64,000 nt of DNA, taken from sequence record NC_009760.1; one strand, given 5' to 3'. Shown piece by piece: positions 1,756 through 15,503 of this stretch. The notes beneath the pieces were generated by a model. It saw only the letters and a list, made by a program, of their open reading frames with translations, was not told the origin of the DNA and did not search any database. Made by a program: the position numbers and the translations under genes. Every line of letters starts with the position of its first letter. Within the stretch, counting starts at the first letter, position 1.

Positions 1756-1773
1756 AGGAGCGAATGCTCCTCT
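1754..1773. terminator. Bidirectional terminator between convergent genes
   Basis: AGAGGAGC-GAAT-GCTCCTCT perfect 8-bp stem. Confidence 0.7.
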
Positions 1774-3530
1774 TATTTGTTGTAGTACGGTTGCAGACAC
1801 ATACGCCAGTGTTTATCGTTTAGGTTCTTGTTACCTGCTTCAATCATAAGTTGTATTACATCTGTGTTCGGAGCGCCACCAATAAAGGTAAAATCCTGTA
1901 TACCACGTTCTTGAATGTAATCACCTAATGACCACGGCAACTTCGCTGCTTCGAACTGCTTATGATAATTCAGCATCGGCTGATTGCGAAGACCAGCAAC
2001 AACCGAACCGCAATAACAATCTGACCAGTGTGCATCTGTTGAAACATAAATACCATTACTGTAATTTGTTTGTACTGCTTTATGGAACTCCACGGCTGAA
2101 CGGTTTCTGTCAGGTGCAGATAGTCGCTCCGGATTCGGTAAGTTCCATTCTACATTCTGACCGACATACCTTTCAATACCAACGATGATAGATGCTTTGA
2201 ATCTACCAGCCATAGCCTTTGTATAGTCGGTTAATGTACCTTGACGGGTTAATATGATTGGTGTACGTGTTTGAGCAGCGTACGAGGCAATGCCGTACGT
2301 CATAAGATGTTCCTCGCCATTTACAACGAGTACCTTCTTCTCACCTGTACCAAACCATGTGGATACATTCCCTGATAGTTCATACCGATCATTCCCGTTA
2401 ATGCGGTCTACCTGTAGTCCCATTGCACGAAGCTCTGCTTCTACGTTACCGCCGATTGACCACTTTGTTCCTACGACAATGGCACGATTTGCGCCAAGTC
2501 TACGTATCTCATTCTTGATTGGCGTTGGTACGCCGTCATATGGTACAGGGAATAGTGGCCCATTAACGGTAGCGGCAAGTGGTACGGCACATAACATTTC
2601 AGGAGAACCTTGCTCGCCTTCCGGTCTAACACGACGCTTCTCAAGTACATCGTACTCTAGAGAAAGCATAGTTGGTAAATCGACTACGCCGTCCTCACGC
2701 TGAATGTTAAATGGATTACTACCACGACGTTGCTTCGCTTGGTATAACCATACGGCTACCTTCGTCGCAATATCGAAACGACCATTTACCATTAGACCAG
2801 CTTCAAGGTTACGCTTTGTAATGTCACCAACCCAGCGACCTTGCATGTCGTCACCTTCACCGCACATCTCATTAAACATCTTCACGCCAAGCAGTGGCCC
2901 CGAACCATACTTACCATCGTACTGAATACTACCGTCAGGTGAACCCATCCATAGACCAAACAATCCGCCCGGATATTTATCTAAGCGTTTCTGTAAGTCG
3001 ATTTCCCATTGACTGCGGTAATCATAACGACCACCACCGATTGTTTGATGGATACGATAACCATATGCAGATTCAGGAGCATAACGTAAACAGATATACC
3101 ATTCTCCCGACCAACGTCCAATGGCACGATTCATCCACGGATTCGTGAATACAGCGTCCGGCATAATTCTATCCCAAACACCTGCGTCACCTTGATAGTA
3201 TTTGTTCCAGTTAAACTTGATTGGATCCCAACCCATTCCCACTTCACGAAGACGTTGTTGTAATTGTCGTATCGCTGTTGTTTGCGGTGCTTCAATACAA
3301 CGTGGGTCTAGGTTCTGAAATTCAGGGCCATCCCAATCCGTTTGTCCAATGTGTAAGTTAAGCGGCCAGTGAAATTCTTTATGCACATACACATCTGTTA
3401 CTTGCTCTTGTGGTTGGGGTAATTGAAGCGGTGCAAGTACGACTGTACCTGTTCCGCCACCCCAGTGATGCCGTGATACAGCAGCAGCCGTTTCATATAC
3501 ATCGGCTCCACTCACAACTTGAAATCCCAT
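1773..3530 (-). CDS. Cell-wall-binding repeat 2 (CWB2) protein with an inserted peptidoglycan-binding-like domain
   Basis: CWB2-like units (SGADVYETA, RINGNDRYELS, RLSAPDRNRSA, TPIILT, FTFIGG); internal NGRFDIATKVAVWLYQ..DGVVDLPT resembles PG_binding_1. Confidence 0.65.
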   Translation of the reverse strand: MGFQVVSGADVYETAAAVSRHHWGGGTGTVVLAPLQLPQPQEQVTDVYVHKEFHWPLNLHIGQTDWDGPEFQNLDPRCIEAPQTTAIRQLQQRLREVGMGWDPIKFNWNKYYQGDAGVWDRIMPDAVFTNPWMNRAIGRWSGEWYICLRYAPESAYGYRIHQTIGGGRYDYRSQWEIDLQKRLDKYPGGLFGLWMGSPDGSIQYDGKYGSGPLLGVKMFNEMCGEGDDMQGRWVGDITKRNLEAGLMVNGRFDIATKVAVWLYQAKQRRGSNPFNIQREDGVVDLPTMLSLEYDVLEKRRVRPEGEQGSPEMLCAVPLAATVNGPLFPVPYDGVPTPIKNEIRRLGANRAIVVGTKWSIGGNVEAELRAMGLQVDRINGNDRYELSGNVSTWFGTGEKKVLVVNGEEHLMTYGIASYAAQTRTPIILTRQGTLTDYTKAMAGRFKASIIVGIERYVGQNVEWNLPNPERLSAPDRNRSAVEFHKAVQTNYSNGIYVSTDAHWSDCYCGSVVAGLRNQPMLNYHKQFEAAKLPWSLGDYIQERGIQDFTFIGGAPNTDVIQLMIEAGNKNLNDKHWRMCLQPYYNK

Positions 3531-3616: not shown

Positions 3617-4279
3617 TTAAGCGTAATACACTGATGGTGGTTCTTTCATCGGCTGTACATTCATCTTCTCTACTTCATCCACTGTAAAGAACTTTTTGTT
3701 AGCAACCGGAAACCACTGATTTGAAAATTTCCAGTTTGGTGATTGTGAACGAACATCATATCTGTTCGAGTTTAAATTAATAATGCGAACCTGTAACCCG
3801 TATAGTCTTGCGTTTAATAGCGCTATACGATACGCTAGTAAGTCCGGCTCTGCTCCGTAATAAATCAGTGCCTTCGGATCGTTGACCTTCTTCGCAACCG
3901 CTAAGATTAAGCGTCCAGTTCCGCAGTATGGATCCAGTAGCGTTTCTGTATTGTCGTAAAGAGTTACGGCATAATGTAGGTCAACATACTGTGTTACCTT
4001 ATCTCTAGAAATGAGAGTGTCAGATTTGCCAACACGTTGCTCATATACTTCGCCGAACCAATCCCACATATCTTCACGTAGTAGATCAAGGTCTAACTCT
4101 GCATCTAAGCGAGTCATCACATCTTGTCGTAACCACGGTGTATCAATCATCGTTTCGTAGCTAAGTTTATAGGCTACGTATTGAAGCATGGCATCGAACG
4201 CTTGCGTAGCGTCCTCTACCTTATCTTGCTCCATGATGATGTCCATGATTTTATTGAGCATCTTTAACTGCTTTGTCAT
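3617..4279 (-). CDS. N6-DNA-methyltransferase-like SAM-binding protein (apparently truncated)
   Basis: DWFGEVYE, LLDPYCGTGRLILA (motif I), YGAEPD, IALLN; no NPPY/F motif. Confidence 0.6.
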   Translation of the reverse strand: MTKQLKMLNKIMDIIMEQDKVEDATQAFDAMLQYVAYKLSYETMIDTPWLRQDVMTRLDAELDLDLLREDMWDWFGEVYEQRVGKSDTLISRDKVTQYVDLHYAVTLYDNTETLLDPYCGTGRLILAVAKKVNDPKALIYYGAEPDLLAYRIALLNARLYGLQVRIINLNSNRYDVRSQSPNWKFSNQWFPVANKKFFTVDEVEKMNVQPMKEPPSVYYA

Positions 4280-5191: not shown

Positions 5192-5785
5192 CTATAACTT
5201 ATGAACAATCATATTGGTAGTTGACGGTACAATATCGAAGTAATGTTCTTGATCCATTATAACAATATTTGCCTCTATAATGGTATCCGGAAGCATTGGT
5301 GTTCCTTCTTGATATGACCGGACAGCTATGTACTGACGATACTGATGCTTACCCATTAAGACCGTTGCCGGCTTTAGATTTTGCTTCGCCATCTCTTCCA
5401 TCTTGTCTTGGATTAATTCCAGTATCTCTTGGCACTCTTCGGTGTATACAATCTCAAGCATATCTTGACCGGAAGCATGACGAGGGAACATAAACTTAGT
5501 TGGTCTTGGCGTCGTAGGTTTCACTTTCGCTGTACCTTTCGTGCTGATAAACCCTGCACCATAACGTTCTACCGTCTTATACTGGTCAAGCACATCGTCT
5601 GTTGTTTTAGCTGGTTCTTTGTTAACTTCAAACACCGGTTGCGGTATCGGTAATCCATTCTCGTCATATAGGTTTTGAGGTTTTAGCGTACCACTATGCT
5701 TCGAAAAATCATATATTACCATGCTGAATCTCTCCTTCATATTGCTCCCAATCCATATCGCCAATGAAGTATTCATTGTAATCAT
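5192..5785 (-). CDS. Hypothetical protein
   Basis: 197-aa ORF in an operon; true start probably internal. Confidence 0.55.
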   Translation of the reverse strand: MITMNTSLAIWIGSNMKERFSMVIYDFSKHSGTLKPQNLYDENGLPIPQPVFEVNKEPAKTTDDVLDQYKTVERYGAGFISTKGTAKVKPTTPRPTKFMFPRHASGQDMLEIVYTEECQEILELIQDKMEEMAKQNLKPATVLMGKHQYRQYIAVRSYQEGTPMLPDTIIEANIVIMDQEHYFDIVPSTTNMIVHKL

Positions 5786-6476
5786 TCGGATACGGCTTCA
5801 CGTATACAATACGCTTAATGCCAGCTTGATTCAACTGACGAGTACAGTACAGACATGGTTCATGTGTTACATACGCTGTTGCGCCTTCTGATGATATACC
5901 AAGGCGTGCGCATTGTAGTAACGCATTCTCTTCTGCATGATTGGTACGAACGCAGTGACCGTCCTTCATTAAGTGACCGATGTCGTCGCAGTGCGGCATA
6001 CCCTTTGGACTACCGTTGTATCCAGTTGCAATGACACGGTTCTCTTTAACAAGAACACAACCGACTCTTGCACGGCTACAGGTTCCACGTTCTGCTACAT
6101 GAAGTGCTTGCTCGATGAAGTATTGATCCCACGGCTTACGAACTCGCTTTGGATTCGGTTTCTTTTCTTCCGGGAATAATTCATGATAACGTTCCTCGGT
6201 ATAATCTTCAAAGCAGTACATACGACCATAAAAGAATTTTAAGTGTCTCATCTCTTCTTCTGTGCAACGTATTAATATACTTATTGCTAAGGCATTAGGC
6301 GCAGGATTCGGTACATTTGTTGCGATATAAGGCTCGACATGTAGCTTTAAGATATTTACATCTAGACCTACTTGCGGATTAGACATCGTTTTCCATTTTC
6401 GAACTGCGTTCATTTCATCTTCCTGCGGAATAGTTAGCATATAATAATGAATGTTACTAACAAGGTATCTAGGCAT
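5709..6476 (-). CDS. dCMP deaminase with N-terminal extension
   Basis: RGTCSRARVGCVLV, IATGYNGSPKG, HAEENA, PCLYC zinc motifs. Confidence 0.9.
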   Translation of the reverse strand: MPRYLVSNIHYYMLTIPQEDEMNAVRKWKTMSNPQVGLDVNILKLHVEPYIATNVPNPAPNALAISILIRCTEEEMRHLKFFYGRMYCFEDYTEERYHELFPEEKKPNPKRVRKPWDQYFIEQALHVAERGTCSRARVGCVLVKENRVIATGYNGSPKGMPHCDDIGHLMKDGHCVRTNHAEENALLQCARLGISSEGATAYVTHEPCLYCTRQLNQAGIKRIVYVKPYPNDYNEYFIGDMDWEQYEGEIQHGNI

Positions 6477-7102: not shown

Positions 7103-7291
7103 TCACTTCTTCTTGTATCGTTCTAATTCTTCGGGGGATAATGTATACTTCTTCATCTCCCCGCTTAATTCCTTCCACTCGTCAGGTTTTTCATGAGGTA
7201 ATGTTACGCCCGGTGATTTATATTCATAGCAGACAAAACCAGTAGAGTGCATCGTTTGTCTACGAATACCTTTTGACTTTACTTCACTCAT
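7103..7291 (-). CDS. Small hypothetical protein
   Basis: Start overlaps the upstream stop. Confidence 0.5.
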   Translation of the reverse strand: MSEVKSKGIRRQTMHSTGFVCYEYKSPGVTLPHEKPDEWKELSGEMKKYTLSPEELERYKKK

Positions 7292-8259
7292 TTCTGTTTA
7301 TCCCACATGCTAGGTGGTAACTTACCAACTGTACTCATCAATGCTTCATAAGCTGGTATGCTCTCCATATCGAAACGATCCGGATTGTCCGGATCTGATT
7401 CACCGTATCCTTCTTTGATAGCCATTGTTAGTAGGTCAGCGAAAGAAAGTTCTTTATCACGTAATGTGCGCATTGCTTTCTTCCATGATTGAATGTGTGG
7501 GCCATGATACTCATATAACGCTTCCCATTTCTCAGGGTCGATCTGCGTTACGATATTCCACATATCTTTTACAACATCGACAGTTGCGCCCTGCGCTCCT
7601 CGTTCGAATATACGTTGCGTGAAGACGTTTTTGATAAGAGCCTCTTCACTGAACTCCATTAAGAATGGTGGCATGATATAACCAACTGGAAGTAAAGAAC
7701 GAGCCGCTTGCATTTGTTGTTTTGCAATCTCTTCATCTTGTCCTTTCTTCACTCGTGCTACCATCTCAACCGCTTTCAATCCTGTCTCCATGAAGTCCCC
7801 TTTTGCTTCTGATGGTGACTCAAATCCCCACGGCATGTTGGCACGTTGACCACCGGCAATACGAGAAGTACGACCTACGCTATATGTTACTAAGTGGTCA
7901 TACACTGGTTTACCTACGCCAACGAATAAGAATAGAATACTTTCGCCACGGATTGGTTCATAGCTATGTCCAGCCTTCACCATGCCGTTTAAGAAGCGGT
8001 CTACGTTATCCATGTTGTTGTACTTACCTAAGTAAATAGCAGCCTTGAATGCAGAGCTAAGACGGTCAGCGTCCGTTGCACGTAAAGCAATTACACGACC
8101 GGATTGAATTGCACTGAATCCGTCTTTCGTATAGCAAAGGTTAATGAACTTTTCTAGGTCATCTAGTGCCTTGTTTGTATCGACAATATCATCGCTGACA
8201 AATTGTACTCTCCCTGTACTGCGTAATGCTTCTCTGTTTAATACGAAGTCTTTTGTCAT
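7288..8259 (-). CDS. Highly divergent ThyX (flavin-dependent thymidylate synthase) fold protein
   Basis: AGHS, FLFVGV..VYDHL, QRA, ARSLLP, TQR, AQ and IDP occur in ThyX order; canonical RHRx7-8S motif absent. Confidence 0.6.
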   Translation of the reverse strand: MTKDFVLNREALRSTGRVQFVSDDIVDTNKALDDLEKFINLCYTKDGFSAIQSGRVIALRATDADRLSSAFKAAIYLGKYNNMDNVDRFLNGMVKAGHSYEPIRGESILFLFVGVGKPVYDHLVTYSVGRTSRIAGGQRANMPWGFESPSEAKGDFMETGLKAVEMVARVKKGQDEEIAKQQMQAARSLLPVGYIMPPFLMEFSEEALIKNVFTQRIFERGAQGATVDVVKDMWNIVTQIDPEKWEALYEYHGPHIQSWKKAMRTLRDKELSFADLLTMAIKEGYGESDPDNPDRFDMESIPAYEALMSTVGKLPPSMWDKQK

Positions 8260-8270
8260 CTACTTATCCC

Positions 8271-8969
8271 CTATTCTAGTATTCTAATTCGTGCCACAAT
8301 GCCTTCTTCTCTGACACCAGCGTCCTCTAAACATAATCGCTTACCAGCGAATGGTTTGAGTTCTTCATTGCCATACTGCAATAACTTGTCTACATCAAAT
8401 GTATCGTCTGCGGTTGGCATAAACTCATGCAAGTCTTCGTCAGTGAAACTATATCCTCCAACTTCACGAGGGAACAGAATAACATCGCTAACACGTAGTT
8501 CACAAGCACGGTCATATTGGTAACGGATTTCTAAATCAATATCAGAAGAACCCACTCCGCCGTACAATATAATGCCATTCTTTTCTGGTACGATTTCATA
8601 ATCTGTACCAGACCCATTCTTATAAACAACAATCGTGCTTTGCATAATGTCGTTAATGTCATGGTCGAAAACAAATAGTCTTCTTCCATAAGACGGGTCT
8701 TTCTCGAAGTCATACTTCTGTTCATGTCTACCTAGCTTCTTCTCGTGTACAAACGGCATACCCGGAAGTGGCTTAGATAAAAGGCTACTTGGATACATCC
8801 TTTGATTCTTATTTGAACCTAACGTCATAATCGGTACGCTTCCAAACGTAGTTTCTTTTGTTATCGGCGCTTGCAGTTCACCAACCTCTTTACCATTAAT
8901 AAGTGCTTTCACACTTTCGGTTGGAGTAGACCAGCCAATCTTTTCTTTTAACGTTCGTTTAGACATCAT
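8271..8969 (-). CDS. Hypothetical protein
   Basis: 232-aa ORF in an operon. Confidence 0.55.
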   Translation of the reverse strand: MMSKRTLKEKIGWSTPTESVKALINGKEVGELQAPITKETTFGSVPIMTLGSNKNQRMYPSSLLSKPLPGMPFVHEKKLGRHEQKYDFEKDPSYGRRLFVFDHDINDIMQSTIVVYKNGSGTDYEIVPEKNGIILYGGVGSSDIDLEIRYQYDRACELRVSDVILFPREVGGYSFTDEDLHEFMPTADDTFDVDKLLQYGNEELKPFAGKRLCLEDAGVREEGIVARIRILE

Positions 8970-9379
8970 GTATGACTCACTCGCATTCGTTGAGTTGGAT
9001 TCACAATCTTACGAAGGTCTGTAATCCCTCCATCATTGATGTGTTCCTGTTGCTCTTTGTATTCGGCAAAGGCTTGCTCATAAAATAAGCGTGCCGGATC
9101 ATCCTCTGTAAAGTCGAGAACTTTCCTACACGTTAATTCAGTCATACCCCTATTCATGCGCAAATCTTCAATAGTAAACATTGCCAAACATTTACCATTA
9201 TAAATCAATGGAAGCGGTGTGTCCATTGGATAAACACGGTAACCTTCTTTTTCTACTCGAAGCATTCTGTGGTTCGCAATATCCTCTTCGTAGTTCTGAT
9301 ATTCTCTCTTCTGCCATTCGGTCTTTGCGTCCTTTTCAGACGTCACTATATACCAATTAAATTCTGTCTGCATACCCAT
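8966..9379 (-). CDS. DUF2584-like protein
   Basis: MGMQTEFNWYIVT and EKEGYRVYPMDTP resemble the Bacillus DUF2584 family. Confidence 0.55.
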   Translation of the reverse strand: MGMQTEFNWYIVTSEKDAKTEWQKREYQNYEEDIANHRMLRVEKEGYRVYPMDTPLPLIYNGKCLAMFTIEDLRMNRGMTELTCRKVLDFTEDDPARLFYEQAFAEYKEQQEHINDGGITDLRKIVNPTQRMRVSHT

Positions 9380-9430: not shown

Positions 9431-9700
9431 TTAGTCTGCTAAATGATACTCAATGTCGTTGTAGCTATTACCGAAGTAGTAGTCAACAACATGAAGTGGA
9501 GCGTGCTTGTGATGTAATTCATCAGTATACGCTGCTTCGATGTAACCTTTCTTCGCTTCGAAGTTATCAATCGGGTTGATTAATACTTCACACTTTGGCG
9601 CTCCCGGGATTGTTACCTTTAGTGCCATGTACTTTGTATTTGCAATGCTATGATTCTTTAGTGCGTCTAATAGTGCTTCCATTGATAATTTAGGTATCAT
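9431..9700 (-). CDS. Hypothetical protein
   Basis: Coupled to the flavodoxin stop. Confidence 0.55.
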   Translation of the reverse strand: MIPKLSMEALLDALKNHSIANTKYMALKVTIPGAPKCEVLINPIDNFEAKKGYIEAAYTDELHHKHAPLHVVDYYFGNSYNDIEYHLAD

Positions 9701-10176
9701 TTTTCTAGCTCCTTTAGTATATGAGATACAAACACCGGGAATTTATCCATGTCTAATTGCTGTGGTGCTTGCTCGACTTTTAATGTGACTGCAAAGTTTG
9801 TATATGCTTCTAACGTCACTGCACATTCATCTACAGCTCCGCAGAAGATTGGGTAACATGTTTCCCCTGTACCGAATGCGCCGGTAACAAGATCACGAAT
9901 GTCATCGTTTTGGAATTTCTCAAGTACCGGCTTAAATTTCGTCGGTAACTCTCCATCGCCCCATGTATATGTTCCGAGTATTACAGCGTCGTATTCATGC
10001 AAGATAGATTCATAGAACTCATTATGCCCGTAAACATCTACCTTACATCCGGCACGCTGGAAGGCTGCGGATAAACCGAGCGCAACCTCCTTTGTATTAC
10101 CGGTGTTGGAACAATATACGATGGCTACCTTATAGTGACGCAAAGTTGTTTTTCTTCGTTGCGCCAGAGTAATCAC
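9697..10176 (-). CDS. Short-chain flavodoxin (RNR-associated)
   Basis: IVYCSNTGNTKEVA, LGTYTWGDGELP, FGTGETCYPIFCGAVD. Confidence 0.9.
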   Translation of the reverse strand: MITLAQRRKTTLRHYKVAIVYCSNTGNTKEVALGLSAAFQRAGCKVDVYGHNEFYESILHEYDAVILGTYTWGDGELPTKFKPVLEKFQNDDIRDLVTGAFGTGETCYPIFCGAVDECAVTLEAYTNFAVTLKVEQAPQQLDMDKFPVFVSHILKELEK

Positions 10177-11173
10177 GGGACTTGTTCTCGAATTGGTCAG
10201 TTTTCGTATGTTCCATCATCTCATCCGAGAAGACTTGAATCCACGGCATCGGGTTGCCACGTTCTTCATAGATATTATCCATGCCTAATTGACGTACACG
10301 TTTGTTTGCAAGGTACTCGATGTAGTGGTCGAACTCTTCTAAGTCTAAACCTTCGATGTCAGCTAAGATTTCGCCCGCCCACTCTTTTTCAGTTGCGACT
10401 GCTTCTTTTAAAGAGTCCACAATGTACTGTGCATTCTCTTGTGTATTTAGTTCCGGATTCTCTGTTAGCAATCTACGGATCAATAAGCCGATGAAGTATG
10501 CATGTTGCATTTCATCACGCTGGATATATGAAATCATTGTACTCGACTTCATCATCTTCTGTTGACTCGCAAGCCAGTAGAAGAAGGCGAATCCTGAATA
10601 GAAGTAGATACCTTCTAAATTAATAGACTGCACCAGCATACGGAACAAGTTTTGTAAGGAAGGATTCTCTGCGAAGTCCTCATATACATCTAATACAAGT
10701 TTGTTACGTTTCGCTAATACAGGGTGTTTCATTGTTTCATTGAAGTATTGATTCTGAACAGGTAAGCGTACAAGTGAACTTGTAATGTAAGAATACGAAG
10801 TTGTATGTGTTGCTTCCTGCTGTGCGATAAATGCAGAGATGTTTGCAAGTGCAGAGTTCGTTGTGAATCGAATCACTTCAAGAATTGCTTTTACTTGTAA
10901 ACTATCAAGGCAAGCAAGTGCAGTACCGACACGCAAGAATGTATCTTGCTCAATTGGAGTCAGTGAATCCCACATCTTCTCGTCTTCTTTCATCTTGATC
11001 TCTACAGGACGCCAGAAGTTTGCTTCTAGTGTTTGACTAATGTCGTACCAAATCTCATCTTCATCGTTCCAGTTTAGTAATCCGGAACATTCTCCGCCAA
11101 CGATTTTCGTTCCACGGTTCGGATGACTTGGTTCTAGTAGTCTAGGTCTTTTCAGTGTTGCAATAGGGTTCAT
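10130..11173 (-). CDS. nrdF: Class I ribonucleotide reductase beta subunit
   Basis: NFWRPVEI, LACLDSLQ, EATHTTSY, LEGIYFYSGF, RDEMQH metal ligands and radical Tyr; start refined to MNPIAT after GGAGG. Confidence 0.9.
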   Translation of the reverse strand: MNPIATLKRPRLLEPSHPNRGTKIVGGECSGLLNWNDEDEIWYDISQTLEANFWRPVEIKMKEDEKMWDSLTPIEQDTFLRVGTALACLDSLQVKAILEVIRFTTNSALANISAFIAQQEATHTTSYSYITSSLVRLPVQNQYFNETMKHPVLAKRNKLVLDVYEDFAENPSLQNLFRMLVQSINLEGIYFYSGFAFFYWLASQQKMMKSSTMISYIQRDEMQHAYFIGLLIRRLLTENPELNTQENAQYIVDSLKEAVATEKEWAGEILADIEGLDLEEFDHYIEYLANKRVRQLGMDNIYEERGNPMPWIQVFSDEMMEHTKTDQFENKSRDYSGATKKNNFASL

Positions 11174-11227
11174 CGGTATTACCTCCATATAAAGTCCCGC
11201 CCTGAAAATGGGCGGGTTCAGTTAGTT

Positions 11228-13531
11228 TTATGCGTGACACGCTTCGCAATCAGCTTTTAATTTCTGTGATTCACCTTTTACGTAGTAAGTTGTTTTGATT
11301 CCCAACTTATGTGCCGTCTTATGGATGTTTAACAGTTCAGCACCGTCAATGTCGCTTGCAACATATAAGTTAAAGCTAATAGATTGGTCAATGTGACGTT
11401 GCTTCTTCGCCGTTTGTTTAACGCTCCATAACTGGTCAATGTGATGACGAGTCTTACGATACACATTGTACGTGTTATGGTCTAAGCCCGGAGCCGTAAC
11501 TTTAAACTTGAAGTTACCTTTCTCCTCTGCACCTTCAACCGCTGTGATTGGATCGTTACCGTCAGTAGAGCCACCAACTTTAGCAGTCGTTGCATTCGGA
11601 GCAAGTGCCATCATCCAGCCATTACGTACGCCGAACTTCGCAACCTTCTCTTTTAACGCTTTCCACTTAGCAGATACATAGTCACGTTGGTCGAAGTATT
11701 CACCAGTATGCCATGCAGAACCTTCGAAGTATTTGTAAGTACCTTTCTCTTTTGCAAGCTCTACGCTTGAGTCGATTACATGGTACGCAAACTCTTCATA
11801 TAATGTATCCGCATAATTTACTGCTGCTTCTGATTCCCAATCTAATCCTAAGATAGCAAGTAGATGATGCCATCCATATGCACCCATTCCAATTGGACGG
11901 TAGCGTTTGTTTGTTATACCAGCTTGCAGTACGCTGATTGTATTGATGTCGATAATGTTATCAAGCATACGAGTAACGATGCGAATAACACGAGCTAATA
12001 CACCAGCCGGTACAGCTTTCGCTAAGTTCACTGATGCTAAGTTACATACAACGTATTCGCCCGGAGAACGTACCATATGGATATTCTCATTTTCGTCAAT
12101 GTACTCGCCAATAATCATAGATGAAACCTGATTCTGTGCGATTTCTGTACAAAGGTTAGAACAATAAATCGCTGTACGACCAATACCATGAACGTGTTTG
12201 TTCGGGTTCATACGGTTTACTTGGTCACGATAGAACATATAAGGCATTCCCGTTTCAAGCTGAATTTCCATAATGCGAACCATGATGTCCATTGCACGAT
12301 GTGTGTCACGAGGTAGTAACGGGTTGTTTACTGCTTCCATATACTTCTCTTCGTAATACTTCGTATCCTTTTCATCATAGAAGTCATCTAGCGTTAATAG
12401 GTTACCATTCTCATCTTTCCATTGCATGTGTTGTTTGATTTGATGAGGACAGAATGTATGCCATTGACCGATTGAACGACCATTTTCATCAACCTCATCT
12501 AACTTCTTCATGAATAGATCCGGTACAGCTACACCTGTGAAGATTTCCCTTGCACGGTCAGCTTCGTCACCATTGTTCAGTCCTAGTTCAAGGAACTTCA
12601 TAATGTCCTTGTGGTCTAGACACATATAGATAGCGAATGCACCTTTACGTTGTCCTAACTGGTCAACTGTGATTGCCGTTTGGTTAAACATCTTAATCCA
12701 CGGCGTTGTACCTGATGATTTACCTTCGAATCCTTTGATTGGTGAACCCAATGCACGAACCTTACTAAAGTATAAGGCAACGCCTCCGCCATCTTTTGAT
12801 AGACGAGCAGCATCCATGTTTGATAGATAGATACCATCTAAGCTATCATCCACTTTATCTATGAAGCAACTAGATAATTGACCGTAGCTCTTACCTGCGT
12901 TAGCGAACGTTGGAGTTGCCGCCGTTGCATATAAGTTACTTAGCGCCCAGTATAATTCTTTGATGTGCGCTAAACGAGTTGCTTTTGGTTCATTAATCAT
13001 TGTTGTTACAGCAATCATCATCAGACGTTCCTGTGGTAACTCGTATAGGCTACCTTGATAATCTGTAGCAGCATAGCGGTCATTTAATAAGAACAACCCA
13101 ATGAAGTTAAATAAACTATCCTTGCTAGGGTCAATCATTCTACCAATCTCATTAATCTCTTCTTCGCTGTACGACGCTAAGATAGCTGGTGAATAGATTC
13201 CCATCTCTGTCAACGTCTTAATTAACTTATAGAAGCTGCCGTATTTTAAGGAACGGCTGTATCCTCGGTTTTCTGATGCCGTTTTGTACATTTGTTGTAG
13301 TTTCATGTTCGCTGCAACGAATGTCCAATCAGGCGCACCCATGTCGATGTTATTTAAGGCATAGAAGATAGAGTTATGAAGTGCTTTATCTTCCGTATGA
13401 GATAAACGTTTTACCTTCTCAATGATCTTCGTTGCGTCAAGGTTGTACTCTTTCGACGCTCGTTCTAATTCTACGACTACGCTTGCAATGACTTCTTCAC
13501 TATGTTCAACTGTAGGGCTTACTGGGTTCAT
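11228..13531 (-). CDS. nrdE: Class I ribonucleotide reductase alpha subunit
   Basis: ATPTFANAG, QLSSCF, GQRKGA, CSNLCTEI, VCNLASVNL, APNATT, IDQSISFNL, C-terminal CEACHA. Confidence 0.92.
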   Translation of the reverse strand: MNPVSPTVEHSEEVIASVVVELERASKEYNLDATKIIEKVKRLSHTEDKALHNSIFYALNNIDMGAPDWTFVAANMKLQQMYKTASENRGYSRSLKYGSFYKLIKTLTEMGIYSPAILASYSEEEINEIGRMIDPSKDSLFNFIGLFLLNDRYAATDYQGSLYELPQERLMMIAVTTMINEPKATRLAHIKELYWALSNLYATAATPTFANAGKSYGQLSSCFIDKVDDSLDGIYLSNMDAARLSKDGGGVALYFSKVRALGSPIKGFEGKSSGTTPWIKMFNQTAITVDQLGQRKGAFAIYMCLDHKDIMKFLELGLNNGDEADRAREIFTGVAVPDLFMKKLDEVDENGRSIGQWHTFCPHQIKQHMQWKDENGNLLTLDDFYDEKDTKYYEEKYMEAVNNPLLPRDTHRAMDIMVRIMEIQLETGMPYMFYRDQVNRMNPNKHVHGIGRTAIYCSNLCTEIAQNQVSSMIIGEYIDENENIHMVRSPGEYVVCNLASVNLAKAVPAGVLARVIRIVTRMLDNIIDINTISVLQAGITNKRYRPIGMGAYGWHHLLAILGLDWESEAAVNYADTLYEEFAYHVIDSSVELAKEKGTYKYFEGSAWHTGEYFDQRDYVSAKWKALKEKVAKFGVRNGWMMALAPNATTAKVGGSTDGNDPITAVEGAEEKGNFKFKVTAPGLDHNTYNVYRKTRHHIDQLWSVKQTAKKQRHIDQSISFNLYVASDIDGAELLNIHKTAHKLGIKTTYYVKGESQKLKADCEACHA

Positions 13532-14915: not shown

Positions 14916-15503
14916 TTAGAAGGGATGGATAATCTCTACGACTTCATCAATCGTCTTATCAGACGTGTCGATATGGAACATAGATAGTTTTGGTTGACCC
15001 GCATGTTCCTTCTCAAACGCAAACAGGACTTCATCATACTTCGCTTGTTGCTTCATGATCTCCTGCACGTTTTCGGGAATCGCATCAAAAAGGTCAACCT
15101 TCTCACGATTGATTCTATGGATTAATTCCTGTTCATCTGAGTGATGTAGGTAATATATCTCTACTTCGTCAAACACTTCGAATAACTCCTTGCAGAACAT
15201 TTCGTAATGCGTATCGAAGTCATACTGTTTATACAGTTGAGAATATACCATCTCACTAAAGAAGAAGCGGTCAAAGATGAACACCATATCTTTTGTAAGC
15301 CTTTGGTTTTCTTTCATCTTCTGGAACATATCAAAGAATCCTCTGTAATATGTTGCTATCTTGAGTAAGCCATCTAGACCATCGTCGCTGAAACCAGTTG
15401 GATTAATCCATGTGCTTCCCCATATTTCTTCTCGTAGTCGTCTTGAAACTGTGGACTTCCCGGTTGCCCTCGGCCCTTCTAACATAATTGCCTTCAACGA
15501 CAT
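14916..15503 (-). CDS. Thymidylate/dNMP kinase family
   Basis: P-loop LEGPRATGKST; FDRFFFSEMVY. Confidence 0.8.
   Translation of the reverse strand: MSLKAIMLEGPRATGKSTVSRRLREEIWGSTWINPTGFSDDGLDGLLKIATYYRGFFDMFQKMKENQRLTKDMVFIFDRFFFSEMVYSQLYKQYDFDTHYEMFCKELFEVFDEVEIYYLHHSDEQELIHRINREKVDLFDAIPENVQEIMKQQAKYDEVLFAFEKEHAGQPKLSMFHIDTSDKTIDEVVEIIHPF

Follow-up and report, generated by a model that had tools for sequence, protein, structure and literature searches.

A ThyX-derived protein family without the ThyX signature is a probable thymidylate synthase of phage 0305phi8-36 and several bacterial lineages

We analyzed a 64-kb stretch of DNA, here called the window, that corresponds to bases 124001-188000 of the Bacillus thuringiensis phage 0305phi8-36 genome (218,948 bp; record NC_009760). 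The window encodes gp219 (ORF219; window positions 7288..8259, minus strand, with the ATG at 8259 and the stop at 7288-7290), a protein of 323 amino acids (aa) deposited as a "hypothetical protein." Its predicted fold and the distribution of its homologs indicate that gp219 is probably a functional thymidylate synthase belonging to a new subfamily derived from ThyX, with a rebuilt cofactor site. We found no prior description of this family in the literature, and all sources name its proteins hypothetical. What appears to be new is a ThyX subfamily that lacks the ThyX signature and that, judging from genome content and the modeled structure, probably serves several bacterial lineages as their sole thymidylate synthase.

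An intermediate phage clade links gp219 to ThyX

A word-indexed search identified 194 homologs of gp219, and an exhaustive profile search of 1.84 billion representative proteins returned only 32 clusters. The distant clusters form an intermediate clade (P0130-P0151) of proteins of 190-340 aa, found on short phage-like contigs only. When compared by hhalign, the gp219 family (profile A1) matched this clade with an E value of 3.6e-43, and the clade in turn matched canonical ThyX sequences from genomes with an E value of 3.6e-16 (probability, 98.7%). A direct comparison of the gp219 family with ten canonical ThyX sequences gave a marginal result (E about 2e-4; probability, 48%), so that the link is routed via the intermediate clade and homology to ThyX is transitive only.

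Existing profiles mostly stop short of the family. The gp219 protein and its Alicyclobacillus acidocaldarius and Brevibacillus fluminis counterparts had no match to the Pfam Thy1 or NCBIfam thyX profile even at E<=1, none of the Alicyclobacillaceae members reached Pfam Thy1 in genome searches, and two profiles of the family (A1 and A2) had no match among PDB sequences. Only the Heliobacterium members narrowly exceed the gathering (GA) cut-off of Thy1 (PF02511; 24.8 bits), at 25.1-26.3 bits. The ESM Atlas clusters closest to the family carry Thy1 names, and parts of the wider clade are thus already recognizable.

A confident AlphaFold2 model of gp219, made from 45 homologs (pLDDT, 88.7; pTM, 0.86), gave 45 significant Foldseek matches in the PDB, all of them ThyX, also known as flavin-dependent thymidylate synthase (FDTS), or the ThyX paralog PolB. 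No ThyA structure was among these matches, and gp219 likewise had no match in Pfam to ThyA (PF00303). On the strength of this model, the monomer core of gp219 has the ThyX fold, the outcome that a first-pass annotation of the window had named as a check on its own reading. The core domain comprises residues 48-255 (7495..8118, minus strand), and the extensions on either side of it (residues 1-47 and 256-323) are specific to the family. Compared with ThyX, gp219 is longer by about 48 residues at the N terminus and 65 at the C terminus, where it ends in a conserved Pro-x-x-Met-Trp motif.

The first-pass annotation had based its comparison with ThyX on the order of motifs in gp219, and this order is present throughout: G97-H98, T125-Y126-S127...G137-Q138-R139, A186-R187...L190-P191, R216...A222-Q223-G224-A225-T226, and D241-P242. 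It had also recognized that two hallmark ThyX motifs are gone; T125-Y126-S127...G137-Q138-R139 stands in place of RHRx7-8S-x-R, and AQGAT in place of AQxEI. At the sequence level, the resemblance of gp219 to ThyX exceeds a chance order of motifs. Features common to gp219 and the intermediate clade are Gly-x-Arg in place of Ser-x-Arg, a Q-R-L-W...G-A-Q block, and a Trp motif at the C terminus. Unlike gp219, this clade lacks the N-terminal extension and scores above the Pfam Thy1 threshold, with matches of 24-91 bits, and some of its members retain Arg78 or an R-Y-R form of the RHR motif.

The active site carries a fixed alternative signature

To map gp219 residues onto ThyX, we used MAFFT and a chain of hhalign alignments leading from gp219 through P0139/P0144 to the Thermotoga maritima ThyX chains (4kar/3g4a), whose PDB numbering includes a 12-residue tag. 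The residues kept in gp219 are His53 (H98), Arg90 (R139), Arg147, which serves the dUMP phosphate (R187), Arg174, which activates dUMP in ThyX (R216) (PMC8316439), and Ala179-Gln180 (A222-Q223). Those replaced are Arg78-His79-Arg80 (T125-Y126-S127), Glu86 (A135), Ser88 (G137), Tyr91 (A140), Glu144 (Q184), Asn163 (S204), Arg165 (E206), His178 (G221), and Glu182 (A225). On the minus strand of the window, the key stretches are H98-E106 (7942..7968), which reads H-S-Y-E-P-I-R-x-E and is invariant in 121 sequences; T125-N141 (7837..7887), which takes the place of the signature loop of ThyX; Q184-P191 (7687..7710), which contains R187; and R216-T226 (7582..7614). Relative to ThyX, the replacement loop has a 2-residue insertion that brings two invariant arginines, R130 and R133.

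These substitutions are highly conserved. Across 121 homologs, T125, R130, R133, G137, Q138, R139, A140, N141, Q184, R187, E206, R216, and Q223 are invariant, as is H98, so that by alignment the dUMP-binding arginines and the His53 of ThyX are all retained. The RHR(x)7S signature of ThyX is absent, with T125 and G137 present in 121/121 homologs, and the positions of the flavin adenine dinucleotide (FAD)-binding residues R78, H79, R80, N163, R165, and H178 read T, Y, S/T, S, E, and G. An alignment of 45 sequences from phages and cells has about 80 columns without variation. The three substrate arginines are among them, and the substituted positions do not vary either, which argues that the active site is under selection and not in decay. 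As read from these alignments, the family carries a fixed alternative signature in which the substrate-handling arginines survive and both the flavin-phosphate contacts and the Ser/Tyr pair are lost. Other invariant residues, namely, R130, R133, R104, and K117, may bind flavin instead.

The first-pass annotation had treated the loss of Ser88 as a loss of thymidylate synthase chemistry, a premise that proved too strong. In ThyX, S88 and Y91 are thought to aid the exit of the carbinolamine hydroxyl, and the T. maritima S88A, R90A, and Y91A mutants slow this step; S88A is not reported to abolish it (PMC8316439). Both the S88A and S88C proteins have been crystallized (3g4a and 3g4c).

A second type of ThyX without RHR was observed in Paenibacillus radicibacter (L077; G109:C39) and in one of the Brevibacillaceae (L068; G074:C33). 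These sequences score 124-130 bits against Pfam Thy1, have K-Y-V/I for R-H-R together with a 12-residue insertion, and keep S-R-R-Y. Thus, even ThyX proteins that the profile recognizes do not always carry the RHR motif.

The gp219 family fills the gap in genomes lacking ThyA and ThyX

As the first-pass annotation had reported, there is no other thymidylate synthase in the window. When all six frames of the complete 218,948-bp genome of the phage were searched, ThyA (PF00303) and ThyX (PF02511) were again without a match. Among cellular organisms, the stated rule is that those that are self-sufficient have either ThyA or ThyX and that the few exceptions depend on thymidine kinase (TK) (PMC1971073). 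We compared the occurrence of these enzymes with that of the gp219 family in 106 genomes, of which 45 were from Alicyclobacillaceae and 61 from Brevibacillaceae. In Alicyclobacillaceae, 33 genomes carry the family and 31 of these lack both ThyA and ThyX, the exceptions being one with ThyX and one with a truncated ThyA; 11 of the 12 noncarriers have ThyA. In Brevibacillaceae, there are 9 carriers, 7 of them without either enzyme, and ThyA or ThyX is present in 51/52 noncarriers. When the two families are pooled, the gp219 family is found in 39/41 genomes that lack ThyA and ThyX, and ThyA or ThyX is found in 62/64 genomes that lack the gp219 family (Fisher p = 5.6e-23, a value that ignores shared ancestry). 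Hydrogenibacillus schlegelii and Carbobacillus altaicus represent a further lineage in which the gene is present and both ThyA and ThyX are absent.

Each Alicyclobacillus species matched has one copy of the gene, located on the chromosome, and the same holds for Hydrogenibacillus, Carbobacillus, and some Brevibacillus and Paenibacillus. These chromosomal orthologs are 55-60% identical to gp219 and share its active-site signature. Based on gene content, about 40 genomes of free-living Bacillota have neither ThyA nor ThyX and encode this family as their sole thymidylate synthase candidate. We considered whether the Alicyclobacillus and Brevibacillus copies reside in prophages and rejected this, as their neighbors are housekeeping genes; the A. 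acidocaldarius and B. fluminis copies stand alone among such genes, adjoining mnmA or trmB. Incomplete assembly was likewise rejected as the cause of the missing ThyA and ThyX, since complete chromosomes are available for several carriers and 31/33 and 7/9 carriers conform to the pattern. Salvage through TK fared no better as an explanation. TK is present in 27/33 Alicyclobacillaceae carriers, but its presence is unrelated to the type of synthase, and because six carriers are without TK, salvage cannot explain those genomes.

The distribution of dihydrofolate reductase (DHFR; FolA) follows a similar pattern. In all 11 of the Alicyclobacillaceae genomes with ThyA, folA adjoins thyA, whereas FolA is absent from 28/33 carriers of the gp219 family. 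DHFR is often missing in users of ThyX, which does not oxidize tetrahydrofolate (PMC1971073), and the absence of FolA from most carriers therefore favors a reductive, ThyX-type reaction for the gp219 family. Given that the canonical FAD contacts are gone, dependence of this reaction on flavin is something that we infer.

One carrier, A. mengziensis, has a relic thyA-folA operon in addition to its gp219-family gene (L080:1631-2499; chromosome G002:C1:4158130-4158998). The relic thyA encodes 200 aa and has lost Pfam positions 132-212 from its interior, and the adjacent folA keeps only the first 44 of 159 DHFR positions. This is displacement of the thyA-folA operon caught in progress.

In another of the Alicyclobacillaceae (G022:C6:1903-3047), a TAG codon in frame splits thyA, and the genome is without a gp219-family gene.

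Phage and prophage copies suggest repeated transfer into cells

Besides 0305phi8-36, the family occurs in phage-like contigs of about 210 kb and in phage KKP_3916, which lacks ThyA and ThyX and encodes its gp219-family gene near its ribonucleotide reductase (RNR). The gene adjoins RNR genes in three unrelated elements. In Heliobacterium chlorum, H. mobile, and Heliophilum fasciatum, the family is present in 3 to 10 or more copies (L042-L049, L053-L057, L061). H. mobile has a normal ThyX plus five to seven gp219-family copies, which lie in prophage-like modules. We annotated one such locus (L039:1879-11098) by open reading frames and Pfam and found the order PolA, PD-(D/E)XK nuclease, Hjc, NrdG, NrdD, gp219-family gene, DNA methylase, and dNMP kinase.

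A quick maximum-likelihood tree, for which the intermediate clade served as the root, places the Heliobacterium copies at the base, followed by jumbo-phage-sized contigs. The cellular clades, namely, Alicyclobacillus (sister to KKP_3916), Hydrogenibacillus/Carbobacillus, and Brevibacillus, are nested among phage-like sequences. This topology suggests that the gene moved from phage to cell at least three times, with moderate support and with long outgroup branches that urge caution.

Two further observations concern individual copies. In H. mobile, a TAA codon lies in frame within one gp219-family copy, and a second copy is either split or truncated. A gp219 homolog with 54% identity is also encoded on the 206,502-bp "plasmid pla" of Paenibacillus sp. 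EC2-1 (L006). This element is similar in size to 0305phi8-36 and may belong to the same lineage, either as a phage-plasmid or as a prophage that has not integrated.

Proposed reaction and alternative explanations

In the reaction that we propose, RNR (gp224/gp225) and the dCMP deaminase gp215, all encoded in the window, would supply dUMP. The gp219 protein would then methylate C5 of dUMP to yield dTMP, with methylene-tetrahydrofolate as the carbon donor, and the kinase-like gp229 would pass dTMP on towards dTTP. ThyX is a homotetramer in which three subunits contribute to each active site, and we envisage that gp219 would likewise form an oligomer whose subunits share active sites. The hydride would come from reduced flavin and not from tetrahydrofolate, in keeping with the frequent absence of FolA. 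The invariant residues R130, R133, Q138, N141, H122, R104, and E206 may together rebuild the cofactor and phosphate site that was lost from ThyX.

Such an enzyme would be closest to ThyX (PF02511; T. maritima TM0449, PDB 1o26/1o28), which forms dTMP from dUMP, CH2-H4folate, and NAD(P)H and can make up for a lost thyA. The two are linked by transitive sequence homology, and gp219 keeps the equivalents of His53, Arg90, Arg147, Arg174, and Gln180. Their genomic role and position also appear to be the same, with phage copies near RNR, dCMP deaminase, and dNMP kinase genes and with ThyA replaced in cells, where carriers, like users of ThyX, are often without FolA. Where ThyX has RHR(x)7S, gp219 reads T-Y-S ... 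G, and a dependence on flavin, established for ThyX, would be an inference for gp219. With ThyA, gp219 would share the net reaction from dUMP to dTMP, and the two are mutually exclusive in Alicyclobacillaceae and Brevibacillaceae outside the exceptional genomes listed below; in contrast, their folds and mechanisms are unrelated, and the folA that always adjoins thyA is missing from most gp219-family genomes.

Several points weigh against the assignment of gp219 as a thymidylate synthase. The claim is drawn from comparative genomics and a predicted fold, direct sequence searches with gp219 found no match in Pfam, PHROGs, NCBIfam, or the PDB (phmmer), and the residue equivalences come from sequence and profile alignments and not from inspected coordinates. 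All of the FAD-binding residues that define ThyX (R78, H79, R80, N163, R165, and H178) are replaced, R165 by an invariant Glu, so that binding of flavin by gp219 is not assured; S88 and Y91, which help ThyX through the carbinolamine step, are replaced as well. On the genomic side, the complementarity with ThyA and ThyX spans only about three or four independent lineages of the gene tree, and completeness values are not given for the genomes compared. The family co-occurs with ThyA or ThyX in G009, G074, G099, two Paenibacillus genomes, Gordonibacter, and Heliobacterium, and neither this family nor ThyA or ThyX was seen in two genomes, G024 and G078. The latter two may be incomplete assemblies or additional unexplained cases.

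We weighed three other explanations for these data. One of the two alternatives put forward in the first-pass annotation was that gp219 uses a ThyX scaffold to make a noncanonical pyrimidine, such as 5-hydroxymethyl-dUMP or another C5-modified dUMP or dCMP, that replaces thymine or cytosine in virion DNA. Phage homologs of ThyA are known to have taken this route to exotic bases (PMC7824862), and the loss of S88 and Y91, the proposed drivers of the reductive route to a methyl group, together with the changed FAD-binding positions makes arrest at an exocyclic methylene or hydroxymethyl stage chemically conceivable. We nevertheless regard this explanation as improbable. The identical invariant signature is found in single-copy chromosomal orthologs that are the only thymidylate synthase candidates of about 40 free-living genomes, and BamHI, BstNI, and SpeI cut 0305phi8-36 virion DNA into the fragments predicted from its sequence, with normal Sanger sequencing and PCR (PMC3357382). 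Furthermore, the phage has a dCMP deaminase and a thymidylate-kinase-like enzyme, which form the usual route to dTTP, and no glycosyltransferase or other hypermodification transferase was recognized beside gp219. It is the other alternative of that annotation, a ThyX subfamily without the signature, that is supported by the predicted fold, the transitive homology, and the invariance of the replacements.

It is about equally improbable that gp219 is a ThyX-fold methyltransferase acting on another substrate (UMP, CMP, or an RNA or nucleotide-sugar precursor), that its anticorrelation with ThyA and ThyX is a coincidence of lineage, and that thymidylate comes from salvage or from some other enzyme. 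The presence of TK in most carriers (27/33) and the few independent lineages behind the anticorrelation fit this possibility, and PolB (PDB 4p5a/4p5b), the UMP/dUMP methylase of polyoxin biosynthesis, provides a precedent. Yet six carriers lack TK, the pattern repeats in Alicyclobacillus, two groups of Brevibacillaceae, and Hydrogenibacillus/Carbobacillus, and a thyA-folA operon is decaying in a carrier genome. PolB is also unlike gp219 in retaining the ThyX signature, such that its depositors named it ThyX, and in residing within an antibiotic gene cluster; relatives of gp219 are found in replication and nucleotide modules beside RNR, dCMP deaminase, and dNMP kinase genes and not with antibiotic or RNA modification genes, or else alone in chromosomes devoid of any other thymidylate synthase. 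Finally, the loss of the canonical RHR, Ser, and Tyr and of the FAD-binding residues could mean that gp219 is a catalytically dead relic of ThyX with a structural or regulatory role, for example, in nucleotide sensing. This seems very improbable given the roughly 80 columns that are invariant between phage and cellular sequences, substrate arginines and substituted positions included, and the complementarity with ThyA and ThyX.

A stronger version of the thymidylate synthase assignment, which we put forward tentatively and consider rather unlikely as a whole, is that the family is operationally a third kind of thymidylate synthase. It would be a phage-born offshoot of ThyX without the canonical FAD-binding and Ser/Tyr apparatus that makes dTMP by a different cofactor arrangement or hydride source and that has displaced ThyA, and FolA along with it, on three or more occasions among free-living Bacillota, one of them affecting all of the genus Alicyclobacillus. 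In such an enzyme, the reductant may be, for example, flavin that is bound in a different way, diffusible reduced flavin or flavodoxin, or a nonflavin compound.

Alicyclobacillus, a genus of food-spoilage bacteria, Hydrogenibacillus, and part of Brevibacillus appear to lack both ThyA and ThyX, and one unannotated family fills this gap. If gp219 and its relatives are thymidylate synthases, the RHRx7S definition of ThyX and the list of its "essential" residues would need revision, with three arginines and His53 as the indispensable parts of the site. Thymidylate synthesis could then be correctly annotated in hundreds of genomes and jumbo-phage contigs, and the family would clearly exemplify how a gene from a phage can displace an operon of core metabolism, the decaying thyA-folA relic being a snapshot of the process. 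The specificity of inhibitors is also at issue, because antibacterial compounds against ThyX are being sought and the cofactor pocket of this variant would be a rebuilt one.

Genomic neighborhood of gp219

The neighbors of gp219 are those that the first-pass annotation had listed, namely, a dCMP deaminase, both RNR subunits, a flavodoxin, and a dNMP/thymidylate-kinase-like gene. All lie on the minus strand. The dCMP deaminase gp215 (5709..6476) is supported by the record annotation and by a match to Pfam dCMP_cyt_deam_1 (97.6 bits), and the flavodoxin gp223 (9697..10176, with the record start at window position 10143) by matches to Pfam Flavodoxin_1 (56.7 bits) and PHROG 883. The RNR small (beta) subunit gp224 (10130..11188) matches Pfam Ribonuc_red_sm (229.7 bits), and the large (alpha) subunit gp225 (11228..13531) matches Pfam Ribonuc_red_lgC (460.9 bits). 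The kinase-like gp229 (14916..15503) matches Pfam Thymidylate_kin at 27 bits and PHROG 761, "thymidylate kinase," at 79.5 bits. In addition to these genes, the co-oriented block around gp219 includes gp227, a Holliday-junction resolvase.

The phage authors assigned the flavodoxin gp223 to RNR (PMC2147016). Its match is to the general Flavodoxin_1 family and not to NrdI, and the RNR small subunit is annotated as class Ia. The flavodoxin may pass electrons either to RNR, as the literature assumes, or to the candidate enzyme gp219. We rejected the presence of this neighbor as a sign of flavin chemistry, since the phage authors tie it to RNR and the cellular orthologs of gp219 have no flavodoxin neighbor.

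Between the flavodoxin and gp219 lie the uncharacterized genes for gp220 and gp221, both on the minus strand. The gene for gp220 (8271-8969; 232 aa) lies directly upstream of gp219, and its product had no Pfam or PHROG match; gp221 (8966-9379) is a DUF2584 protein. Downstream of the nucleotide-metabolism block, a 220-aa fragment of an HsdM-like N6-adenine methylase (3617-4279) adjoins a CWB2 cell-wall-binding virion protein (1773-3530), and both are likewise encoded on the minus strand.

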